A stretch of 57,376 nt of DNA from Prasinococcaceae sp. CCMP 1430 (GCA_013416795.1 RQSC01000635.1:1-57376), one strand, 5' to 3'; positions 6,529 through 17,083 are shown, counted from the first letter of the stretch. The notes: generated by a model not told the origin, from the letters alone. Made by a program: numbers and translations.

Positions 6529-7920
6529 ATGGCGGCCGAGCTGTGGGCGGACGAGCGCGAGGTGGTGGCGTCGGCGTACGAGTCCGAGCTCCAGCCCGAG
6601 GAATCCGAGCGCGGCGATCTGGCGCTGACGCTACGTGGGCTGGGGCCGCACACGGCGGGCGGCGCCGAGGACGTGTGGGTGCGCCTCGACGTGCGCTTCG
6701 CGCTGTCTGGCGTGCCTGCGGCCTCAGGCCTTCCGGACTTCGCCGCCGAGGACGTGGAGGCCGAGGTGCTGAACGCGCGCGGCATGGATGAGGATACGGC
6801 CGTCGAGATGCTCGCGGCGGCGCGCGCCGAGGCGCTCGATGAGGGCTGCGCGGAGCCGCCGGGCGTGTGCCTCGCGTGGGCGAGTGCGCTGGTGGAGGCG
6901 CTGATGGCGGCGAACGAGGCCGCCCCGGCCGAGGGCGACTGCTCGGTCTGTTTGTGCCCGCTGCGCGATGAGGACGACGACGAGCCCGAGGCGGTCGTGC
7001 GAGTGAGCTCGTGCATGCACCGCTTCCACCGCGCGTGCATTGTGCGCTGGTGGACCACGGCGGCCGACGCGGCCCTCGCCGAGGACATCAGCCGTCGAAA
7101 CCCCACGCACACGCCTGCAGCACCAAGGTGCGAAGCTAGACGGCGCTGGTGCGCGCTCGGCGGGCACGCGCTGGGCCATGGGACGCAATGAAACTGACGC
7201 CGCCGCCTTGCGACTCTAACACGACGTCTTACGCCCGCTGGATGCCACCGCAGGTGCCCGGTGTGCAAGACCGTCGTCCCGATCGAGGACGTGCGCAAGA
7301 TTTTAGGCGATGCGTTCGCTGATGCCGTCGGGGTGGAGGTGCGCACGGGCGCGGGGGCGAAGACGCCCGAGGAGGCAGCGCTTGCCGTCGCCGCCGCGCA
7401 GGAGAAGGCGGCGATTGAAGCTGCCGCTGCTGCGGAGAAGCGCGCAGGGGGGGAGAGTGAGGCAAGCCACGAATGCGCCGTGATAGGCGAGGCGAGCGAT
7501 GTAGAGAGGCCCGCAATGGTGCACGGCGAACCGCTGCTCGAGCGCAAGAGCACATTTCAGGCGCACGTGGCGATGGTTCGCTCGCAAGCCGAGGTCGAGG
7601 CGGCGATGGCGTACCTGTATGAGTCGCACCTTCGCATCAAGCGTGCGACGCACAACATGCTGGCCTATCGCATCCGCAGCGAGAGCGGCGGGATCATCGC
7701 AGACCACGACGACGATGGCGAGGCCGCCAGCGGCGGGCGGCTCGCGCACCTGCTGCAGGTCACACAGGCCGAAAATGTGCTTGTGGTGGTCAGCCGCTGG
7801 TTCGGAGGGGTGCTGCTCGGGCCGAGCCGCTTCACCCTTATAAACAAGGTCGCGCGTGAGCTGCTGGTGGCAGAGGGCATCGTCGCGAAGCCCTCAGGCA
7901 AGAGAAAGGGCGGCAAGTGA
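6529..7920 (+). CDS. RWD - RING-H2 - IMPACT (UPF0029) fusion protein
   Basis: Exons 6529-7127 and 7254-7920. Splicing (phase 2) completes the RING-H2: CSVC...CMHRFHRAC..W...RCPVC. C-terminal domain RKSTFQAH, ATHNMLAYR, DDDGEAASGGRL, VVVSRWFGGVLLGPSRF is IMPACT/YigZ. Confidence 0.88.
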
Positions 7921-9701: not shown

Positions 9702-12700
9702 ATGGGGCGGCAGCGCGGAGACGCGCCGCGCTGGCGCCGCGCGGGGACACGCGCGAGCGATTTCGCGCGCGCGGCCTCGGCGTCGGCGCTCGCCAAGGGC
9801 GCTCGCGCGGATGACGACGGCGACGCGCCCCAGGCGTACCCGGCGGGCGAGGCATTGTCGAGCTTCGAGGAGACTGCGCGCGCGGCTGAGTTCATGCGCG
9901 GCATGGCACGCAGGGGCGACGAGTTCGACCGCCTGTGGGTCAGGCAGATCGAGTCCGAGCTGGCCGTGGGCTTCCGCGCGGACCCGGCGGCAAAGTACCG
10001 GGAACGCCTCGGTGAGGACGGCGAGCGCCAGGCCGTCGGCCGGGTGCTCGAGGGCCGCAATCGGCCGAAAGGATACGACGACCTGCTGCGGCGCTGGCTG
10101 CCCCCTCTCACCGAGTCCATCCGCGAGGAACAGGAGCGCTGCATGCGGGGGGAGCCGGGCCTCGATCGCCGCATCTACGCACCCTTCCTGTTGCTCGCCG
10201 ATCCGGAGGTGCTTGCGTACATCGCCGTCGCCGAAGCGATGAAGTTGCTCTTCGTGCCTTACAAGGACGACATGCTCGGGGAGAAGAAGCAAAGCAAGAA
10301 GCCCGCCGTGGCCAAGTCTGGCGCCGCGGGCACAGGGCTAGGGCTCGTCAAGGTGGTGCGCATGGCGACGGCCATAGGCCGCGCAGTGGAGGATGAGGTC
10401 ATGCTGAAGCGCCGCTGGTCGAGGCAGCGCAAGGGGCTGCAGACGCCTGCGGAGCCGCAGACGGAGCGCTGGACCATCGACCGCGTGCGGGACGAGGTGC
10501 AGCGCTGCTTGGAGGACCGCGTGCCCGACGTGCGGCTGCTGCGTGACCTGGAAGACGCCACGCGCGGCCGACACGCAGCCGAACTCGCGCCCGCGTACGC
10601 CGTGGACAATATCAAAAATGAGATCGAGGGTCTCCGCGAGAGGCACGCCGCTGCGCTCGAAGACGACGCCGCGCGCTCCGACTGGCGCGGCGTGCGGCGT
10701 ATCGACACGGGCGTCCACGCGGGGCTCTGGGAGGCCGAGTGGGACGTTAACGGCCACCGCGGGCGCCTTGGCCCCTTCTCGCGCCCGCAGCTGGCAGCGC
10801 GGCTGCGCGACAGGTGCGTGATCGTTGCGTGCAAAGGGGACATGAGCGCGGCCGCACCGTACCTCGACTTCGGCCGCGGTGGCTGGATGGATGGCCTTGG
10901 CGACTACCAGTCCGAGCTGCAGTTCCTCGGAAGTGTCGAGGACCCGCACGACTTCCTCGAGCCGCTGGGACTGTCTCGGTACTATGGCGTGGCGCGTGTT
11001 CTTGGCAACGCCCGCAACAGTGTCGGGCTTTCCTCCCAGGTTCGCAGCAACGCCACTTACGAGTGGGCCGCTGAGGTGCCCGTGTGGGAGCCCAGCACGG
11101 ACTTCGAGATGCAGCAAGGCCTGCCCGAGTTCAGCTTCAAAACGCGCCGAGTAACCAAGCTCGCAACGCCCGGGTTGGCGGCGCGGGCGCACGATCGCAT
11201 GGTGCTCGCGCTGCGCCGCCAGGCGGAGCAGTGCGTGGAGCACGGGGATCGAGCGCGCAAGAATCGCTACAAGCCCGGCGCGCGCATGGACCATTTCAAC
11301 GATCGCAAACAGCTGCTTGCACTCTCCGAGCTGCCGCTCAACTACCCGAAGGACGAGTACAGCGAGGAGCTCATCGCCGAGGACGCGGAGCTGCCCCTGC
11401 CGAAGCTTGTCCAAAGGATCCGTCGCGACTTGATGCCGGAAAACCCCCTCAGCGAGCACGAGCTCGAACGCTTCCAAGCCCTGGGGACTGACGGCGGCAC
11501 GCCCCTTCCAGACCTCGGCGAGCAATACCGTTTCAAGATGGTGGCGCGCCACACGGACGCGCAAGGGAACCCTCTCATCAACCCAGAGGCTTCGACGGAG
11601 GGCTCGGGAGGGCGGCTGCCACCGCCGGGCACCTTCAAGCGCGAGATCATCGACAAGGTCACACTGGGGCGCGACGTGGGCTCAACCGCGCGGGACGAGG
11701 CGGTGCGACGCCTGTACTTGAGTTCGGCGGCGCGCATGGGAAATGCCTCAAACGCAGCTGGGGCTCGCCGTGCGCTGTCGGGTCAGGACTGGCCCATGGA
11801 CGTCTGCGCCAAGATCGGTTCGCAGCTGCTTTACCACTTGCTTGTCACGTGCAACATCGAGGTGGACGACGCTGACAGCAACCACGAGATCGTGGGGTCG
11901 GGCTTCAACCCCGTCAGTGAGATGGATCCGCACACCAAGTGGACGGCGGTTGCGAAGCAGTTCTACGGCGAGCCCAAGGCGTACGCTGAGTTTGACGAGA
12001 CTGAGAAGCAGACCTGGGCGGAGAAGCGCGTGGTCCCGGCCTTCTACCATGGCTACGCCTACGACAGCACCAAGATAAGCAGGGGGAAGAAGATGCACAC
12101 CTTCGGCTCAGTCACGGCGCATCCGAATGTCGTCGAGCTCCTCGCCGCGAGCTTCGGCAGTGCGCGCGAGATGATGGAGCCTGTGTTTCAGCCCATGGTG
12201 ACCCCGCCGGCACCGTGGGAGGAATTTCGTCAGGGGCCGCACGTCGTGCGCTACAGCCCGCTCATGCGCACGCGCAACAAGGTTGTGTCGAAGGAGGTCA
12301 GCGATGCCTCGTGGTCGCGCTTGCAGCAGGAGGAGGTCATTAGCGGGGACCCGCTGCGCAACTTGGACCATCCTGAGCGAAAGTACGCGGCAGTGCGGGA
12401 GCTGTACGAGGATGACCTGGAGTGGGCCAAGCGCACGCACTGGACGCCGCAGGACGTCCGCGTGCCCAAGTGGCGGGGCCTGGCGGCGGAGGGTTCTTGC
12501 TCAATGTGGCGAGTATACGACGCCGTCAACTGCATCGGCAGCACGCGGTGGCGCGTGCAGGAGCGCGTCCTGCGCGTGGTGGAGGAGCTGCATGCCAACG
12601 GGGGCAGCGACGTGCTCGAAAAGTTGGGCATGCCGCCGCGGGAGCGCAACGAAATAAGCGTGCTGCCGCCTGCGGGAGTGCCGGGCACCGAAGGGTACAG

Positions 12701-14183
12701 GGAAATGCAGGACGAGCGCAAGAGGGTCATGCTCGAGCGCCGAAGGCAGCGCTTGGGAAATGTGCATCTTGACGCCGAGGCCAAGATGGTCGAGCAGGCC
12801 CTCGATGTTGCGCGCAAGTATGCCACTTATGATGCCATCTACTACCCGCACACGCTCGACTTCCGAGGACGCGTGTACCCGATTCACGGCATCTTCAACC
12901 ACATGGGCGCCGATTACATGCGCGGGCTTCTCGGCTTTGCTGACGGCAAGCGGTTGGGCCCGGGCAACAAGAAGTGGCTGGGCGTCCACATGGCCAACCT
13001 CTGTGGCCACAACAAAGGCACGTTTGAGGATCGCGCGGCGTTCGCGGATGAGATGATCGAGGAGATACTCGACTCGGCCAACAACCCCATCGACGGGAAG
13101 CGCTGGTGGCTCGAGCAGGAGAAGCCCGTGCAGGTGCTCGCGACGTGTATGGAGTTGCGCGACCTGCACGAGTGGGTACGGGCGGGCAACTCGCCAGACG
13201 ACTTCGTATCGTTCCTGCCCGTACAGATGGACGGGAGCTGCAACGGCTTGCAGCATTACGCCGCGCTGGCCCTGGACAGCGACGGCGCGGCCGCCGTGAA
13301 CCTCATTGATTCGGAGAGGCCCGGCGACGTGTACACTAATGTGGCGAGTATCCTCGCGGATCTGGTGGACGAAGACATCCGCAAGCTCAAAGAGGCCCTC
13401 GCGAATGGCGAGCCCGAGAGCCCCCAACGCGTGCAGCAGCTGAGCTTCTTCGAGGCCATTCGCAAGGAGATTGATCGCAAGCTGGTCAAGCAAACGGTCA
13501 TGACGAGTGTGTACGGCGTGACCGCCGTGGGCGCGCGTCAGCAGGTGCAGAGCCGCCTCAAGGAGCGTGACTGGTTCGTCGACGACGAGGACTGCGAAAA
13601 CCTGCAGTACAACGCTGCCATGTATGTCTCCAATCGCACCATGGGCGCCATCAAGTCTCTCTTCACAGAGGCGAAGGAGGTGATGGCGTGGCTGTCGGAC
13701 TGCGCCAACGTGCTGGCCCACGAGAACGAGCGCGTTTCGTGGGAGACGCCGCTGGGCCTGCCGGTGGTGCAGCCCTACCGCGTGCATTCGCAGCGTCAGA
13801 TCAAGACGCGGCTGCAGCAGCTGGTGCTCAATGGCGTCGAGGAGACCAACGACGTGGACAAGCGCGCGCAGCGTTCGGCGTTCCCTCCGAACTTCGTGCA
13901 CTCAGTGGACAGCTCGCACATGATGATGACGGCCTCGGCGTGCTATCGCAACAACGTTACCTTCGCGGCGGTGCACGATTCATTCTGGACGCACGCGGGC
14001 ACCACCGAACGCATGAGCCAGATCCTGCGCGAGGAGTTCGTGCGCCTGTACTCGCACGACCTGCTCGCAGACCTGAAGCGCGAGCTGCAGCAGAAACACC
14101 CACTCGTGAAGTTCCCGGACGTGCCGAGGAAAGGAACCCTCGACATCAACGACGTCAGGAAAGCCAAGTATTTCTTCTCGTGA
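9702..14183 (+). CDS. RPOT: Phage-type (T7-like) single-subunit organellar RNA polymerase with large N-terminal insertion
   Basis: DFRGRVYP, motif A PVQMDGSCNGLQHYAAL, motif B RKLVKQTVMTSVYGVT, FPPNFVHSVDSSHMM, motif C VHDSFWTH, terminal YFFS; intronless 1493 aa. Confidence 0.96.
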   Translation: MGRQRGDAPRWRRAGTRASDFARAASASALAKGARADDDGDAPQAYPAGEALSSFEETARAAEFMRGMARRGDEFDRLWVRQIESELAVGFRADPAAKYRERLGEDGERQAVGRVLEGRNRPKGYDDLLRRWLPPLTESIREEQERCMRGEPGLDRRIYAPFLLLADPEVLAYIAVAEAMKLLFVPYKDDMLGEKKQSKKPAVAKSGAAGTGLGLVKVVRMATAIGRAVEDEVMLKRRWSRQRKGLQTPAEPQTERWTIDRVRDEVQRCLEDRVPDVRLLRDLEDATRGRHAAELAPAYAVDNIKNEIEGLRERHAAALEDDAARSDWRGVRRIDTGVHAGLWEAEWDVNGHRGRLGPFSRPQLAARLRDRCVIVACKGDMSAAAPYLDFGRGGWMDGLGDYQSELQFLGSVEDPHDFLEPLGLSRYYGVARVLGNARNSVGLSSQVRSNATYEWAAEVPVWEPSTDFEMQQGLPEFSFKTRRVTKLATPGLAARAHDRMVLALRRQAEQCVEHGDRARKNRYKPGARMDHFNDRKQLLALSELPLNYPKDEYSEELIAEDAELPLPKLVQRIRRDLMPENPLSEHELERFQALGTDGGTPLPDLGEQYRFKMVARHTDAQGNPLINPEASTEGSGGRLPPPGTFKREIIDKVTLGRDVGSTARDEAVRRLYLSSAARMGNASNAAGARRALSGQDWPMDVCAKIGSQLLYHLLVTCNIEVDDADSNHEIVGSGFNPVSEMDPHTKWTAVAKQFYGEPKAYAEFDETEKQTWAEKRVVPAFYHGYAYDSTKISRGKKMHTFGSVTAHPNVVELLAASFGSAREMMEPVFQPMVTPPAPWEEFRQGPHVVRYSPLMRTRNKVVSKEVSDASWSRLQQEEVISGDPLRNLDHPERKYAAVRELYEDDLEWAKRTHWTPQDVRVPKWRGLAAEGSCSMWRVYDAVNCIGSTRWRVQERVLRVVEELHANGGSDVLEKLGMPPRERNEISVLPPAGVPGTEGYREMQDERKRVMLERRRQRLGNVHLDAEAKMVEQALDVARKYATYDAIYYPHTLDFRGRVYPIHGIFNHMGADYMRGLLGFADGKRLGPGNKKWLGVHMANLCGHNKGTFEDRAAFADEMIEEILDSANNPIDGKRWWLEQEKPVQVLATCMELRDLHEWVRAGNSPDDFVSFLPVQMDGSCNGLQHYAALALDSDGAAAVNLIDSERPGDVYTNVASILADLVDEDIRKLKEALANGEPESPQRVQQLSFFEAIRKEIDRKLVKQTVMTSVYGVTAVGARQQVQSRLKERDWFVDDEDCENLQYNAAMYVSNRTMGAIKSLFTEAKEVMAWLSDCANVLAHENERVSWETPLGLPVVQPYRVHSQRQIKTRLQQLVLNGVEETNDVDKRAQRSAFPPNFVHSVDSSHMMMTASACYRNNVTFAAVHDSFWTHAGTTERMSQILREEFVRLYSHDLLADLKRELQQKHPLVKFPDVPRKGTLDINDVRKAKYFFS

Positions 14184-14346: not shown

Positions 14347-16239
14347 TCAGGGCTTTCTGCGGTTCCCTCGCAGAGTGGCGGCCGCCACCGACCCAGCTCC
14401 GGCGAGCGGCTCGGGCGGCGCCTGGCCGGTGCCACCGTCCGGCTGAGACGCACCCTCCTCGTCCTTGGCGATGGCCTGCTGCGCCCTCCTGTACCTGTCT
14501 CCCTCGGCAATCAGGCCAAGCTGCTGCGGCACGCTGACGAGCGAGTTCGCCGCGAGGTAGCCACTGGCCGCGGCGGCGGGGACTCCAATGCCCGGAAAGC
14601 ACGAGTCGCCGCAACGCAGAAGCCCGGGGATGGGCGTCTTGACGCCTGGAAAGGGCATTTTCGCGACCTGTGGGAGGTAGCGCTCGCGCCCGGCGGCGAG
14701 GGCGGGCCCATACGTCCCGCGATACCGGCGCAGGAAGCGCTCGTGCGTGAGCGGCGAACCGAGGATGTCGACGTCCACCCGCTCGCGGATATCGGGGATG
14801 ATGCGCTCGAGCGCCTCCCACAGGACCTGCGATCGCTTCTCCTTGAATGCCTTGTACTCCGCCGATCCTCGATCCTTGTCAGCCCAGAGGTCGTAGGGCT
14901 CCGATCCTGCCGTGTAGCAGTGGATGACGTGGTGACCCTCGGGCGCGACCTTCGGGTCGAGGATGGAGGGAATAAAAATGGTAATGACGTTCTGCGGGTC
15001 GCTGAGAGGCTTCGACCAGTCATTGACAACCAGGTGGGCGGGGTCGAGGCCCTCAATCAGCCCGTCGCCGCCGCGCACGCCGAGGAAGAGGTGCATGATG
15101 CTGCCGTGCGCCGGAATCTCGAGGCAATCTTCGCGCCACCCCTGGGCACGAGGAGGCAGCCCAGAAGGATCAAGGAGCTTCGCCGTGTCCCAGACGGTCG
15201 CGTTGGACACGACCGCCGTCCGCGCGCGGACGCGCGCGCCACCCTTGAGGCGCACCCCGGCGGCGCGTCCCGTGTCGGGGTCCACCTCGATCTCTTCGAC
15301 GTGCGAGCGCAGACGCATGCTGCCGCCGTGCCGCTCGAGGGCGCCGCTGAGCGTGCCGACGACGGCGCCGGTCCCGCCGACGGGCGCGTTGAGCACGGCG
15401 CCAGGTTTGTGAAAGTTGGCGAGGCAGTAGATCATGGCCGCGCCCATGGTCCCCTCGGCGGGAAAGCCGGAGAAGAAAGACAGACAGTCGATCCAGTTTT
15501 TGAGGAAGGGCTCCTTGATGATGCCGCGCGTCACGCGGCTGAAGGAGTCGAAGAGCAGCGGCACGTCGGCCATTGCCGCCGGGTGGGTGAGGTAGAAAGG
15601 GAGCGCAACCGCCGTCGTCGCAAGGAGCCCGGGGTCCTGCCTCAGGTACTTGAGCGGACACGCATCGTTCGCTTCGCTCAACAGCGCGAGGCGCTCGACG
15701 AGAGCTTCCCACTCGCGCACCGCGGCCTCTGGATCCGACGCGTGCCTCCGCAGGACATCCTTGAAGCCGCCATCGGGGGCGTCGTCGGGCCCGAACGTGT
15801 AGCGCCACGATCCCTCCTCGGTGTGCATTCCCCAGCCGTCATAATTCTCCACCTCCACGTGCTCACCCAGCGCGTCGAGCACCTGCCGCAGCGGGTTGCC
15901 TCCGAACGACGAGCGCTCGAGGCCCTCCCAGATCGATGGCCCCACCTCGAACTCGTACTCGCCGCCGCTCTTGCTCCGGTGCTTGAACATGTGGCAGCAC
16001 CCGCCTGGGAGGGAGTGGGACTCGAGCACGAGGACCTCGTAGCCGTACTTGGCCAGGAGCGCACCGCACGACAGGCCACCGATGCCGCTGCCGATCACCA
16101 CGACGTCCACCTCCTCCTCCTTCGCCGCCGCATGCGCGGCCGCCGCCCCCACCCGCCTGCGCCCCGCAGCGGCGCGGCACGCCCTTCTGCGGAAGTTACG
16201 GTACGGCGACTCATACCCATTATTAGGGTCATTACTCAT
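14347..16239 (-). CDS. Carotenoid isomerase (CRTISO)-family FAD-dependent oxidoreductase; 5' end uncertain
   Basis: DVVVIGSGIGGLSCGALLAKYG..V.ESH..PGGC dinucleotide fold; EFEVGPS; GNPLRQVLDALGE; GSPLTHERFLRRYRGTYGP; CGDSCFPGIGVPAAAASG. Possible acceptor at 16187; gap at 16561. Confidence 0.87.
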   Translation of the reverse strand: MSNDPNNGYESPYRNFRRRACRAAAGRRRVGAAAAHAAAKEEEVDVVVIGSGIGGLSCGALLAKYGYEVLVLESHSLPGGCCHMFKHRSKSGGEYEFEVGPSIWEGLERSSFGGNPLRQVLDALGEHVEVENYDGWGMHTEEGSWRYTFGPDDAPDGGFKDVLRRHASDPEAAVREWEALVERLALLSEANDACPLKYLRQDPGLLATTAVALPFYLTHPAAMADVPLLFDSFSRVTRGIIKEPFLKNWIDCLSFFSGFPAEGTMGAAMIYCLANFHKPGAVLNAPVGGTGAVVGTLSGALERHGGSMRLRSHVEEIEVDPDTGRAAGVRLKGGARVRARTAVVSNATVWDTAKLLDPSGLPPRAQGWREDCLEIPAHGSIMHLFLGVRGGDGLIEGLDPAHLVVNDWSKPLSDPQNVITIFIPSILDPKVAPEGHHVIHCYTAGSEPYDLWADKDRGSAEYKAFKEKRSQVLWEALERIIPDIRERVDVDILGSPLTHERFLRRYRGTYGPALAAGRERYLPQVAKMPFPGVKTPIPGLLRCGDSCFPGIGVPAAAASGYLAANSLVSVPQQLGLIAEGDRYRRAQQAIAKDEEGASQPDGGTGQAPPEPLAGAGSVAAATLRGNRRKP

Positions 16240-17083
16240 TCGAGGGTTCGCTTCAATGGCGCCGCAAGCATGGATTGCCGTGTGCCATGCACGAACCGGA
16301 ACCGGCATGCTGCGTGCTGGATTTGGTTGGTTGGGCGTGCGTCTGTTCCGCATCGTCCGGCAGGCCGGTTCCGGTTCCTGCTTTCCGTGTTCCCGCCAAT
16401 CCGAAACCACAAACTCGTCGTGGTGGTTACACCCAGCTCCGGATCCATTTTCCGGCGCGGCGGCGTTCGGATTCGCGGATTCGGCCACGCGCCCGGCGAA
16501 ATCCGCGATTCCGGGGCCGCGCGCGGCGGCGGCTGTGATGGCGGCGGCTGCGGGGCCGGCNNNNNNNNNNNNNNNNNNNNNNNNNNNNNNNNNNNNNNNN
16601 NNNNNNNNNNNNNNNNNNNNNNNNNNNNNNNNNNNNNNNNNNNNNNNNNNNNNNNNNNNNNNNNNNNNNNNNNNNNNNNNNNNNNNNNNNNNNNNNNNNN
16701 NNNNNNNNNNNNNNNNNNNNNNNNNNNNNNNNNNNNNNNNGCGGCGCGGCCGCCGCCGACCTGGCCTGCGCGTGCGACGCCGTGCGGCCCGCCGCGGAGG
16801 CCTCGCCACCCGCGCGCCCACGAGCGACAGTCTTTACGTGTTTCCTCGAGACGTCAGCTCCGACGGCCAACTGTGCGAACTCGTGGGCCCTGCTGTATGC
16901 GAGAGGAGGCGGGCGACGCCAGCGGCGACCTGGCTCGTGCTCGCTCGAGCGCGCGGCCGGACGCGCCCACAAGCGGAGCGAAGAGGCGACCTGCGCCAGC
17001 GGCGACGCCGCGTCTGACCCCACGTCCAGTGCACGGCGGCTTGCGGATGCGGCGCGCACGCGTGTGCCGCGGCCCCGCCCGCA

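Follow-up and report, generated by a model that had tools for sequence, protein, structure and literature searches.

A 57,376-nucleotide (nt) stretch of DNA from Prasinococcaceae sp. CCMP 1430 (GCA_013416795.1 RQSC01000635.1:1-57376), hereafter called the window in its whole length and having a GC content of ~67%, carries on its plus strand a gene for a T7-like, single-subunit RNA polymerase of the RpoT type, whose N-terminal domain is enlarged by a long in-frame insert with a probable AP2-fold domain. The gene reads as one uninterrupted open reading frame (ORF) in a single exon (9702-14183, 1493 residues), and its product belongs to the RpoT family: on this ORF the Pfam families RNA_pol (PF00940; 3.9e-146, 487.8 bits against a cut-off of 22) and RPOL_N (PF14700; 1.7e-35, 123.5 bits against a cut-off of 30.1) both score well above threshold, and the catalytic motifs are intact throughout, as is the aromatic foot YFFS at the C-terminus. 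Motif A (DGSCNG, 13230-13247) supplies the catalytic Asp 1177, equivalent to D537 of T7 RNA polymerase (RNAP); motif B (RKLVKQTVMTSVYG, from residue 1259, 13476-13517) has Lys 1263 and Tyr 1271 in the places of T7 K631 and Y639; and motif C (HDSF, from residue 1425, 13974-13985) holds the catalytic Asp 1426, the counterpart of T7 D812, with all of these in invariant columns of the RpoT alignment. The nearest solved structures found in the PDB are the yeast and human mitochondrial RNA polymerases (~1e-112), followed by T7 RNAP (~1e-62), and the N-terminus is rich in Arg, Ala and Ser. Best local alignments to the database RpoT proteins listed give 33-53% identity, with none closer found; wherever a listed match bears an organism name, it is an RpoT from a green alga or a land plant, Chloropicon, Chlorokybus and Tetraselmis being among them. 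The RPOL_N plus RNA_pol architecture is thus complete, and it is shared, together with the catalytic motifs and the terminal YFFS, with RpoT, RpoTm and RpoTp of plants and green algae, with Rpo41 of yeast and with human POLRMT.

What distinguishes this enzyme from other phage-type organellar polymerases is the distance between two helices of its N-terminal domain. The stretch is bounded on its left by the block AIGRAVEDEV (residues 224-233, 10371-10400), which aligns with approximately residues 140-149 of T7 RNAP (AIGRAIEDEA), and on its right by WPMDVCAKIGSQLL (beginning WPMDVCAK, from residue 697, 11790-11831), which aligns with T7 RNAP from approximately residue 204 (HKEDSIHVGVRCIEML). In the family alignment the interval from one block to the other is 463 residues here, compared with 26-202 residues (median 63) in 118 other RpoTs. 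An original prediction, made from the sequence alone, had called the protein a T7-like organellar-type polymerase with an unusually long segment of ~460 residues between these blocks; Pfam, the PDB relatives and the catalytic motifs uphold the first part of that description, the family alignment upholds the second, and the motifs it had placed within the segment do lie where it put them (SDWRGV at residue 326, nt 10677; SRYYGV at 425; LNYPKDEY at 546; LVQRIRR ending at nt 11426). Family alignment, codon-position composition and mapping onto T7 RNAP together delimit a lineage-specific in-frame insert at approximately residues 245-689 (10434-11768), which, as aligned, amounts to ~400 extra residues in place of the ~63-residue linker of other RpoTs.

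So large an addition raises the question of a gene-model or assembly artefact, in the form either of an unspliced in-frame intron or of a chimeric join of an RpoT gene to an AP2 gene, and the exact protein is indeed without a record in the gene-position collection. The composition of the insert speaks strongly against both forms. In each 60-codon segment across it the G+C content at third codon positions (GC3) is 0.78-0.93 and that at second positions (GC2) 0.27-0.57, a pattern like that of the flanking exonic sequence of the polymerase, whereas non-coding flanks are flat; synonymous codon use in the insert and in the remaining gene is correlated at 0.92; and, by calculation, ~400 stop-free codons would arise by chance with a probability of roughly 1e-4 at the given base composition. 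Conserved blocks of the N-terminal domain stand in frame on either side, and a repeat search around the insert yielded no convincing terminal repeats, terminal inverted repeats or target-site duplications. Because GC3/GC2 periodicity, a frame shared with both flanks and matching codon use all agree, the insert is read as translated, that is, as coding throughout in the polymerase frame with no intron, and an artefact of either kind seems very improbable. An imperfect direct repeat of 28 nt (10484-10511 and 11687-11714, 75% identity) has one copy near each end of the insert, the two being in the same frame, exactly 401 codons apart and encoding VRDEVQRCL and ARDEAVRRL; in coding DNA rich in GC it could have arisen by chance, or it could be a relic of the insert's origin. 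An Rfam scan of the window gave no matches.

When T7 gene 1 is aligned through the RpoT profile, the insert falls at approximately residues 157-190 of T7 RNAP, and the yeast counterpart of the insertion site is roughly Rpo41 462-505. We take the T7 segment to be the surface "subdomain H" that lies beside the promoter-binding helices. In work of 2002 by Yin and Steitz and by Tahirov and colleagues, this segment is reported to refold and to approach the RNA exit path during elongation. The next longest linker at the site, 202 residues and devoid of AP2 signal, belongs to a 1138-residue RpoT from a Logan assembly (P0019), which shows that large insertions at this position are tolerated in other lineages also.

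Within the insert, residues 325-391 (10674-10874) form a probable AP2-fold domain, denoted D1, marked by the motifs SDWRGVRR, LWEAEW, RLGPF, AARLRD and YLDFG. AP2 was the sole family that Pfam reported for the insert, at 13.8 bits (E 0.073) on the full protein and so below the cut-off of 33.3 bits. A second, separately built AP2 profile, a hidden Markov model (HMM) of 120 bacterial, phage and metagenome proteins recruited with a phage AP2 domain, recovers WRI1, ERF096, TEM1 and AtERF1 from the PDB at 4e-31 to 7e-15 and, because it does so, is a valid model of the fold. On the polymerase this HMM scores 18.6 bits (P 9e-8), with its best domain on D1 (residues 325-371) and a second on residues 480-503; among 20,000 composition-preserving shuffles of the insert none reached the real sequence score and one reached the domain score, and in 77k six-frame decoy residues from the same window the next best match had 5.2 bits, compared with 13.2 for D1. 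Alignment of D1 to the AP2 alignment with hhalign gave 82% probability (P 1e-5) over 59 of 60 columns, running from SDWRGV to YLDF, a score reached by none of 300 shuffles and none of 271 natural decoys, while the flanks of the insert, used as controls, stayed below 1% probability.

Structural modelling is consistent with this assignment. A single-sequence AlphaFold (AF2) model of poor overall quality (predicted local distance difference test, pLDDT, 40) nevertheless places a strand-strand-strand-helix order at D1, with pLDDT ~45 there, and a model of D1 guided by the AP2 alignment reaches pLDDT 82. Compared with 48161 representative chains, the guided model has AP2 domains as its six best structural neighbours, with Foldseek in agreement: AtERF1 (2GCC; Z 7.3, root-mean-square deviation 2.3 Å over 60 residues, 30% identity), WRI1 (7.1), TEM1 (6.8) and three Toxoplasma mitoribosomal AP2 proteins (6.2-4.7), ahead of a first unrelated chain at 4.4. 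D1 appears to share with AP2/ERF domains (PF00847), as found in ERF, AP2 and WRI1 proteins and in the modules of HNH and GIY-YIG endonucleases, the RGV, W-A-E, LG-F, AAR--D and LDF signatures from end to end, as well as a predicted three-strand-plus-helix topology, and in the structural alignment of the model it is 30% identical to AtERF1. It departs from them in its score below the Pfam cut-off, in a first loop longer by 5 residues and a longer C-terminal loop, and in being embedded in an enzyme, not in a transcription factor or a nuclease. Several base-contact positions also differ: by the base contacts reported for AtERF1 by Allen et al. 1998, RGVRR, Glu346 and Arg353 are presumably kept, and the counterparts of W154, R162 and W172 presumably lost, so that the specificity of D1, if it has any, would differ from that of AtERF1.

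No other polymerase with this arrangement came to light. None of 120 other RpoTs carries an AP2 signal (best score -0.7 bits), nor do 80 metagenomic RpoT loci retrieved by a scan with the RpoT alignment, all at no more than 48% identity; in the 778 kb of metagenomic loci translated in six frames (1.5 million residues) the best score is a partial match of 11.3 bits inside a polymerase domain. Homologues of the insert were likewise absent from a word-index search with residues 290-640, from an exhaustive phmmer search of 1.84 billion representative proteins, from PHROGs, from the PDB by phmmer, from a metagenome scan with the protein and from a scan of viral contigs. The AP2-carrying RpoT architecture is, on present sequences, known from one genome only. 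The literature searched holds no description of an AP2 domain fused to a phage-type RNA polymerase, in keeping with the original prediction, which knew of none; articles in which RpoT, AP2 and algae occur together concern plant signalling, to judge by their titles and abstracts, and are not descriptions of such a fusion.

The principal alternative at the level of homology is that the AP2 resemblance of the insert arose by chance in a lineage-specific expansion rich in Arg, Ala and Leu. Several observations weigh against a functional AP2 domain and, in part, favour this alternative: the gathering score of Pfam is not reached (13.8 versus 33.3 bits), Pfam finds nothing in the isolated 75-residue D1, phmmer with the insert retrieves no match in the PDB or among the 1.84 billion proteins, and the matches of a fold search with the single-sequence model are, at pLDDT 40, meaningless; the pLDDT-82 model is biased by the AP2 alignment that guided it and shows that D1 is compatible with the fold, but does not prove this independently. 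Only ~4 of the 7 residues that we presume to contact bases in AtERF1 are kept, and purifying selection on the insert cannot be shown, because no relative with the insert was found among all those examined. The partial 11.3-bit match in the metagenomic loci illustrates what chance can yield. Set against these points, D1 is picked out alike by several methods and by two AP2 profiles of separate construction, with an alignment from end to end, and neither composition-preserving shuffles (0 of 300 for hhalign, 0 of 20,000 for the HMM sequence score) nor decoys from the same genome ever attained its score. While the PF00847 profile alone falls short, the custom profile and hhalign do match D1, and we consider it very probable, from these comparisons, that D1 is a true AP2-fold homologue; chance resemblance appears improbable.

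A second AP2-like unit, D2, is a weaker case. It would span residues 425-524 (10974-11273) with long loop insertions, its best-matching core running from FKTRRVTKLATPGLAARAHDRMVLAL to HGDRARKNRY. The custom HMM gives it 0.6 bits (P 0.04, residues 480-503) and hhalign a probability of 17-29% against the AP2 alignment, rising to 40-58% once D1 is added (P 1e-4 to 1.5e-3); its overall significance is p ~0.004-0.01. Its hhalign score was reached by 1 of 300 shuffles and by none of 271 natural decoys, but two of the latter came within 0.6 score units and on examination are not AP2 domains, which counts for chance resemblance where D2 is concerned. Pfam found no match in isolated D2 or in the flanks of the insert. 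That D2 is an AP2 domain is therefore suggestive, with long loop insertions required and the balance about even. A BLASTP match between D1 and D2 (E 0.001 for the single pair, 21 bits) was rejected as evidence, chance matches in 200k decoy residues being equally good, and a possible third unit at approximately residues 610-685 was dropped (hhalign P 0.12).

The pairing of D1 and D2 invites comparison with plant double-AP2 proteins such as APETALA2, ANT and WRI1. The likeness lies in tandem units and in their spacing: with SRYYGV taken as the start of D2, the gap to D1 is 33 residues, the same distance as between the WRI1 repeats (7WQ5_A). It goes no further than that, as D2 is not established, and comparison with the WRI1 linker and with the double-AP2 structures revealed no resemblance. 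The segment LNYPKDEYSEEL...LVQRIRR (LNYPKDEY...LVQRIRR, 11337-11426), which the original prediction had likened to the NFP..Y..EL...LRR linker of double-AP2 proteins, lies downstream of D2 instead of linking D1 to D2, and neither a Pfam family nor a PDB entry, solved double-AP2 proteins included, matches it. Of the two AP2/ERF-like domains first proposed, D1 is thus sustained by HMM, hhalign, shuffles and decoys and D2 is suggestive at most, the linker assignment is unsupported, and the plant double-AP2 architecture of two repeats with a conserved linker is apparently not the one present here, spacing alone agreeing. Two metagenome proteins of bacterial or phage type (P0125 and P0129) have three tandem AP2 domains with ~15-30 residues between them, P0125 also with an HNH_3 domain and P0129 with no other Pfam domain on record.

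As to where the module came from, a tblastn search with D1 of 2.3 Gb of phage genomes gave non-significant matches throughout, but the two of lowest E (0.3 and 2) coincide exactly with the segments that Pfam assigns to AP2 in two "Seg-like" homing endonucleases (GIY-YIG/NUMOD3) of Rhizobium phages. These phage genes (L001:538-1389 in RHph_X2_25 and L002:643-1401 in RHph_TM3_3_14B) encode GIY-YIG, NUMOD3 repeats and a C-terminal AP2 domain, with GIY-YIG weak in the former and undetected in the latter, and their AP2 domains score 24-29 bits, likewise under the 33.3-bit cut-off of Pfam. Such endonucleases being the source of D1's most significant database matches, the insert might descend from a homing endonuclease or other mobile element that carried AP2, landed in the gene and became domesticated there. 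Neither Pfam nor PHROGs finds a nuclease or NUMOD motif in it, however, convincing target-site duplications and terminal repeats are missing, codon use fits the host gene, and the plant-dominated Pfam profile and the phage-type profile score D1 alike (13.8 and 13.2 bits), all of which makes this origin a distant prospect.

The way in which phage-type organellar polymerases of plants and algae locate their promoters is not yet settled, and we know of no Mtf1/TFB2M-like factor for them. Against this background we favour, as the probable reading of the sequence comparisons, a catalytically intact, nucleus-encoded, phage-type organellar polymerase whose expanded linker holds an AP2 module as a predicted nucleic-acid-binding arm. 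The variable surface linker of the N-terminal domain, at T7 ~157-190 by the promoter-binding helices, would have grown by ~400 translated residues and would hold D1, a true though divergent AP2-fold domain, together with what is probably a further copy in eroded form, D2. As an added arm, the module would most probably anchor the polymerase to organellar DNA close to the start site or upstream of it, serving promoter finding or nucleoid tethering, and would supplement the promoter contacts that the enzyme already makes, not substitute for them. We prefer tethering to DNA, or contact with promoter DNA upstream; D1 keeps RGVRR, Glu346 and Arg353, which we take to be DNA contacts in AtERF1. Promoter recognition by the insert is a plausible idea, but the role in promoter specificity first suggested for this protein, with built-in modules that may replace or supplement a separate specificity factor, reaches further than the evidence does. 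The stronger proposition, in which a tandem AP2 module with sequence specificity is built into the promoter-binding domain so that the polymerase itself picks mitochondrial or plastid promoters, we regard as rather unlikely; were it true, promoter choice by the polymerase polypeptide would be a third solution beside the T7 specificity loop and separate factors of the Mtf1/TFB2M/TFAM type. With Mtf1/TFB2M, TFAM and the specificity and AT-rich recognition loops of T7 RNAP the arm would have in common, if it binds promoters, the provision of extra DNA recognition to a T7-like core, a functional analogy only, since sequence and fold are unrelated.

The same site lends itself to a different function, or to none. 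A real AP2 domain need not recognise promoters: its ligand may be nascent RNA close to where the transcript leaves the enzyme, some other RNA or a protein, or the domain may be no more than a neutral passenger that a variable loop on the surface tolerates. RpoTs vary in length more at the insertion site than anywhere else, D2 looks eroded and conservation of the insert is not demonstrable. The site as mapped here corresponds, moreover, to the T7 region that we take to contribute to the RNA exit path in elongation. In Toxoplasma, mitochondrial AP2 proteins bind rRNA as components of the mitoribosome (PMC11652630). Toxoplasma and Plasmodium mtAP2-1 to mtAP2-4 offer a precedent for AP2 domains that work in an organelle (PMC11652630), and Toxoplasma mitoribosomal proteins figure among the structural neighbours of D1 (Z 4.7-6.2), but they are ribosomal proteins in their own right, with fragments of rRNA as their ligands, and not parts of a polymerase. 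Against these alternatives stand the strong codon bias over all ~440 codons of the insert and the lack of any stop, which show that the segment is not decaying DNA. The RGVRR, Glu and Arg positions retained in D1, which we take to touch DNA in AtERF1, also tell against a role divorced from DNA. RNA binding by the AP2 module is a serious rival, with a tolerated passenger domain as a third possibility, and this family of explanations has an appreciable, if minority, claim.

Under the favoured reading of a DNA-holding arm, the protein would provide a direct handle on promoter finding, combining one polypeptide, one deletable module and a small organellar genome, and it would add the inside of a polymerase to the places where the AP2 fold occurs, alongside transcription factors, homing endonucleases and apicomplexan mitoribosomes. 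If the module is a passenger, the case still illustrates how much added protein the loop at T7 157-190 tolerates.

Other features of the locus are incidental to the polymerase. Two antisense ORFs overlap its gene, at 10338-11564 (minus strand, 408 residues) and 12501-13901 (minus strand, 466 residues); they are the by-product expected from the very high GC3 of the sense strand and not genes. Directly downstream and convergent lies an ORF of 824 residues with coding-like GC3 (14347-16821, minus strand), near whose 5' end is a run of N marking an assembly gap. Upstream, a translated frame at 7198-7917 on the plus strand matches the Pfam family UPF0029, an IMPACT-type domain, at 3.2e-29 and served as a non-AP2 decoy.

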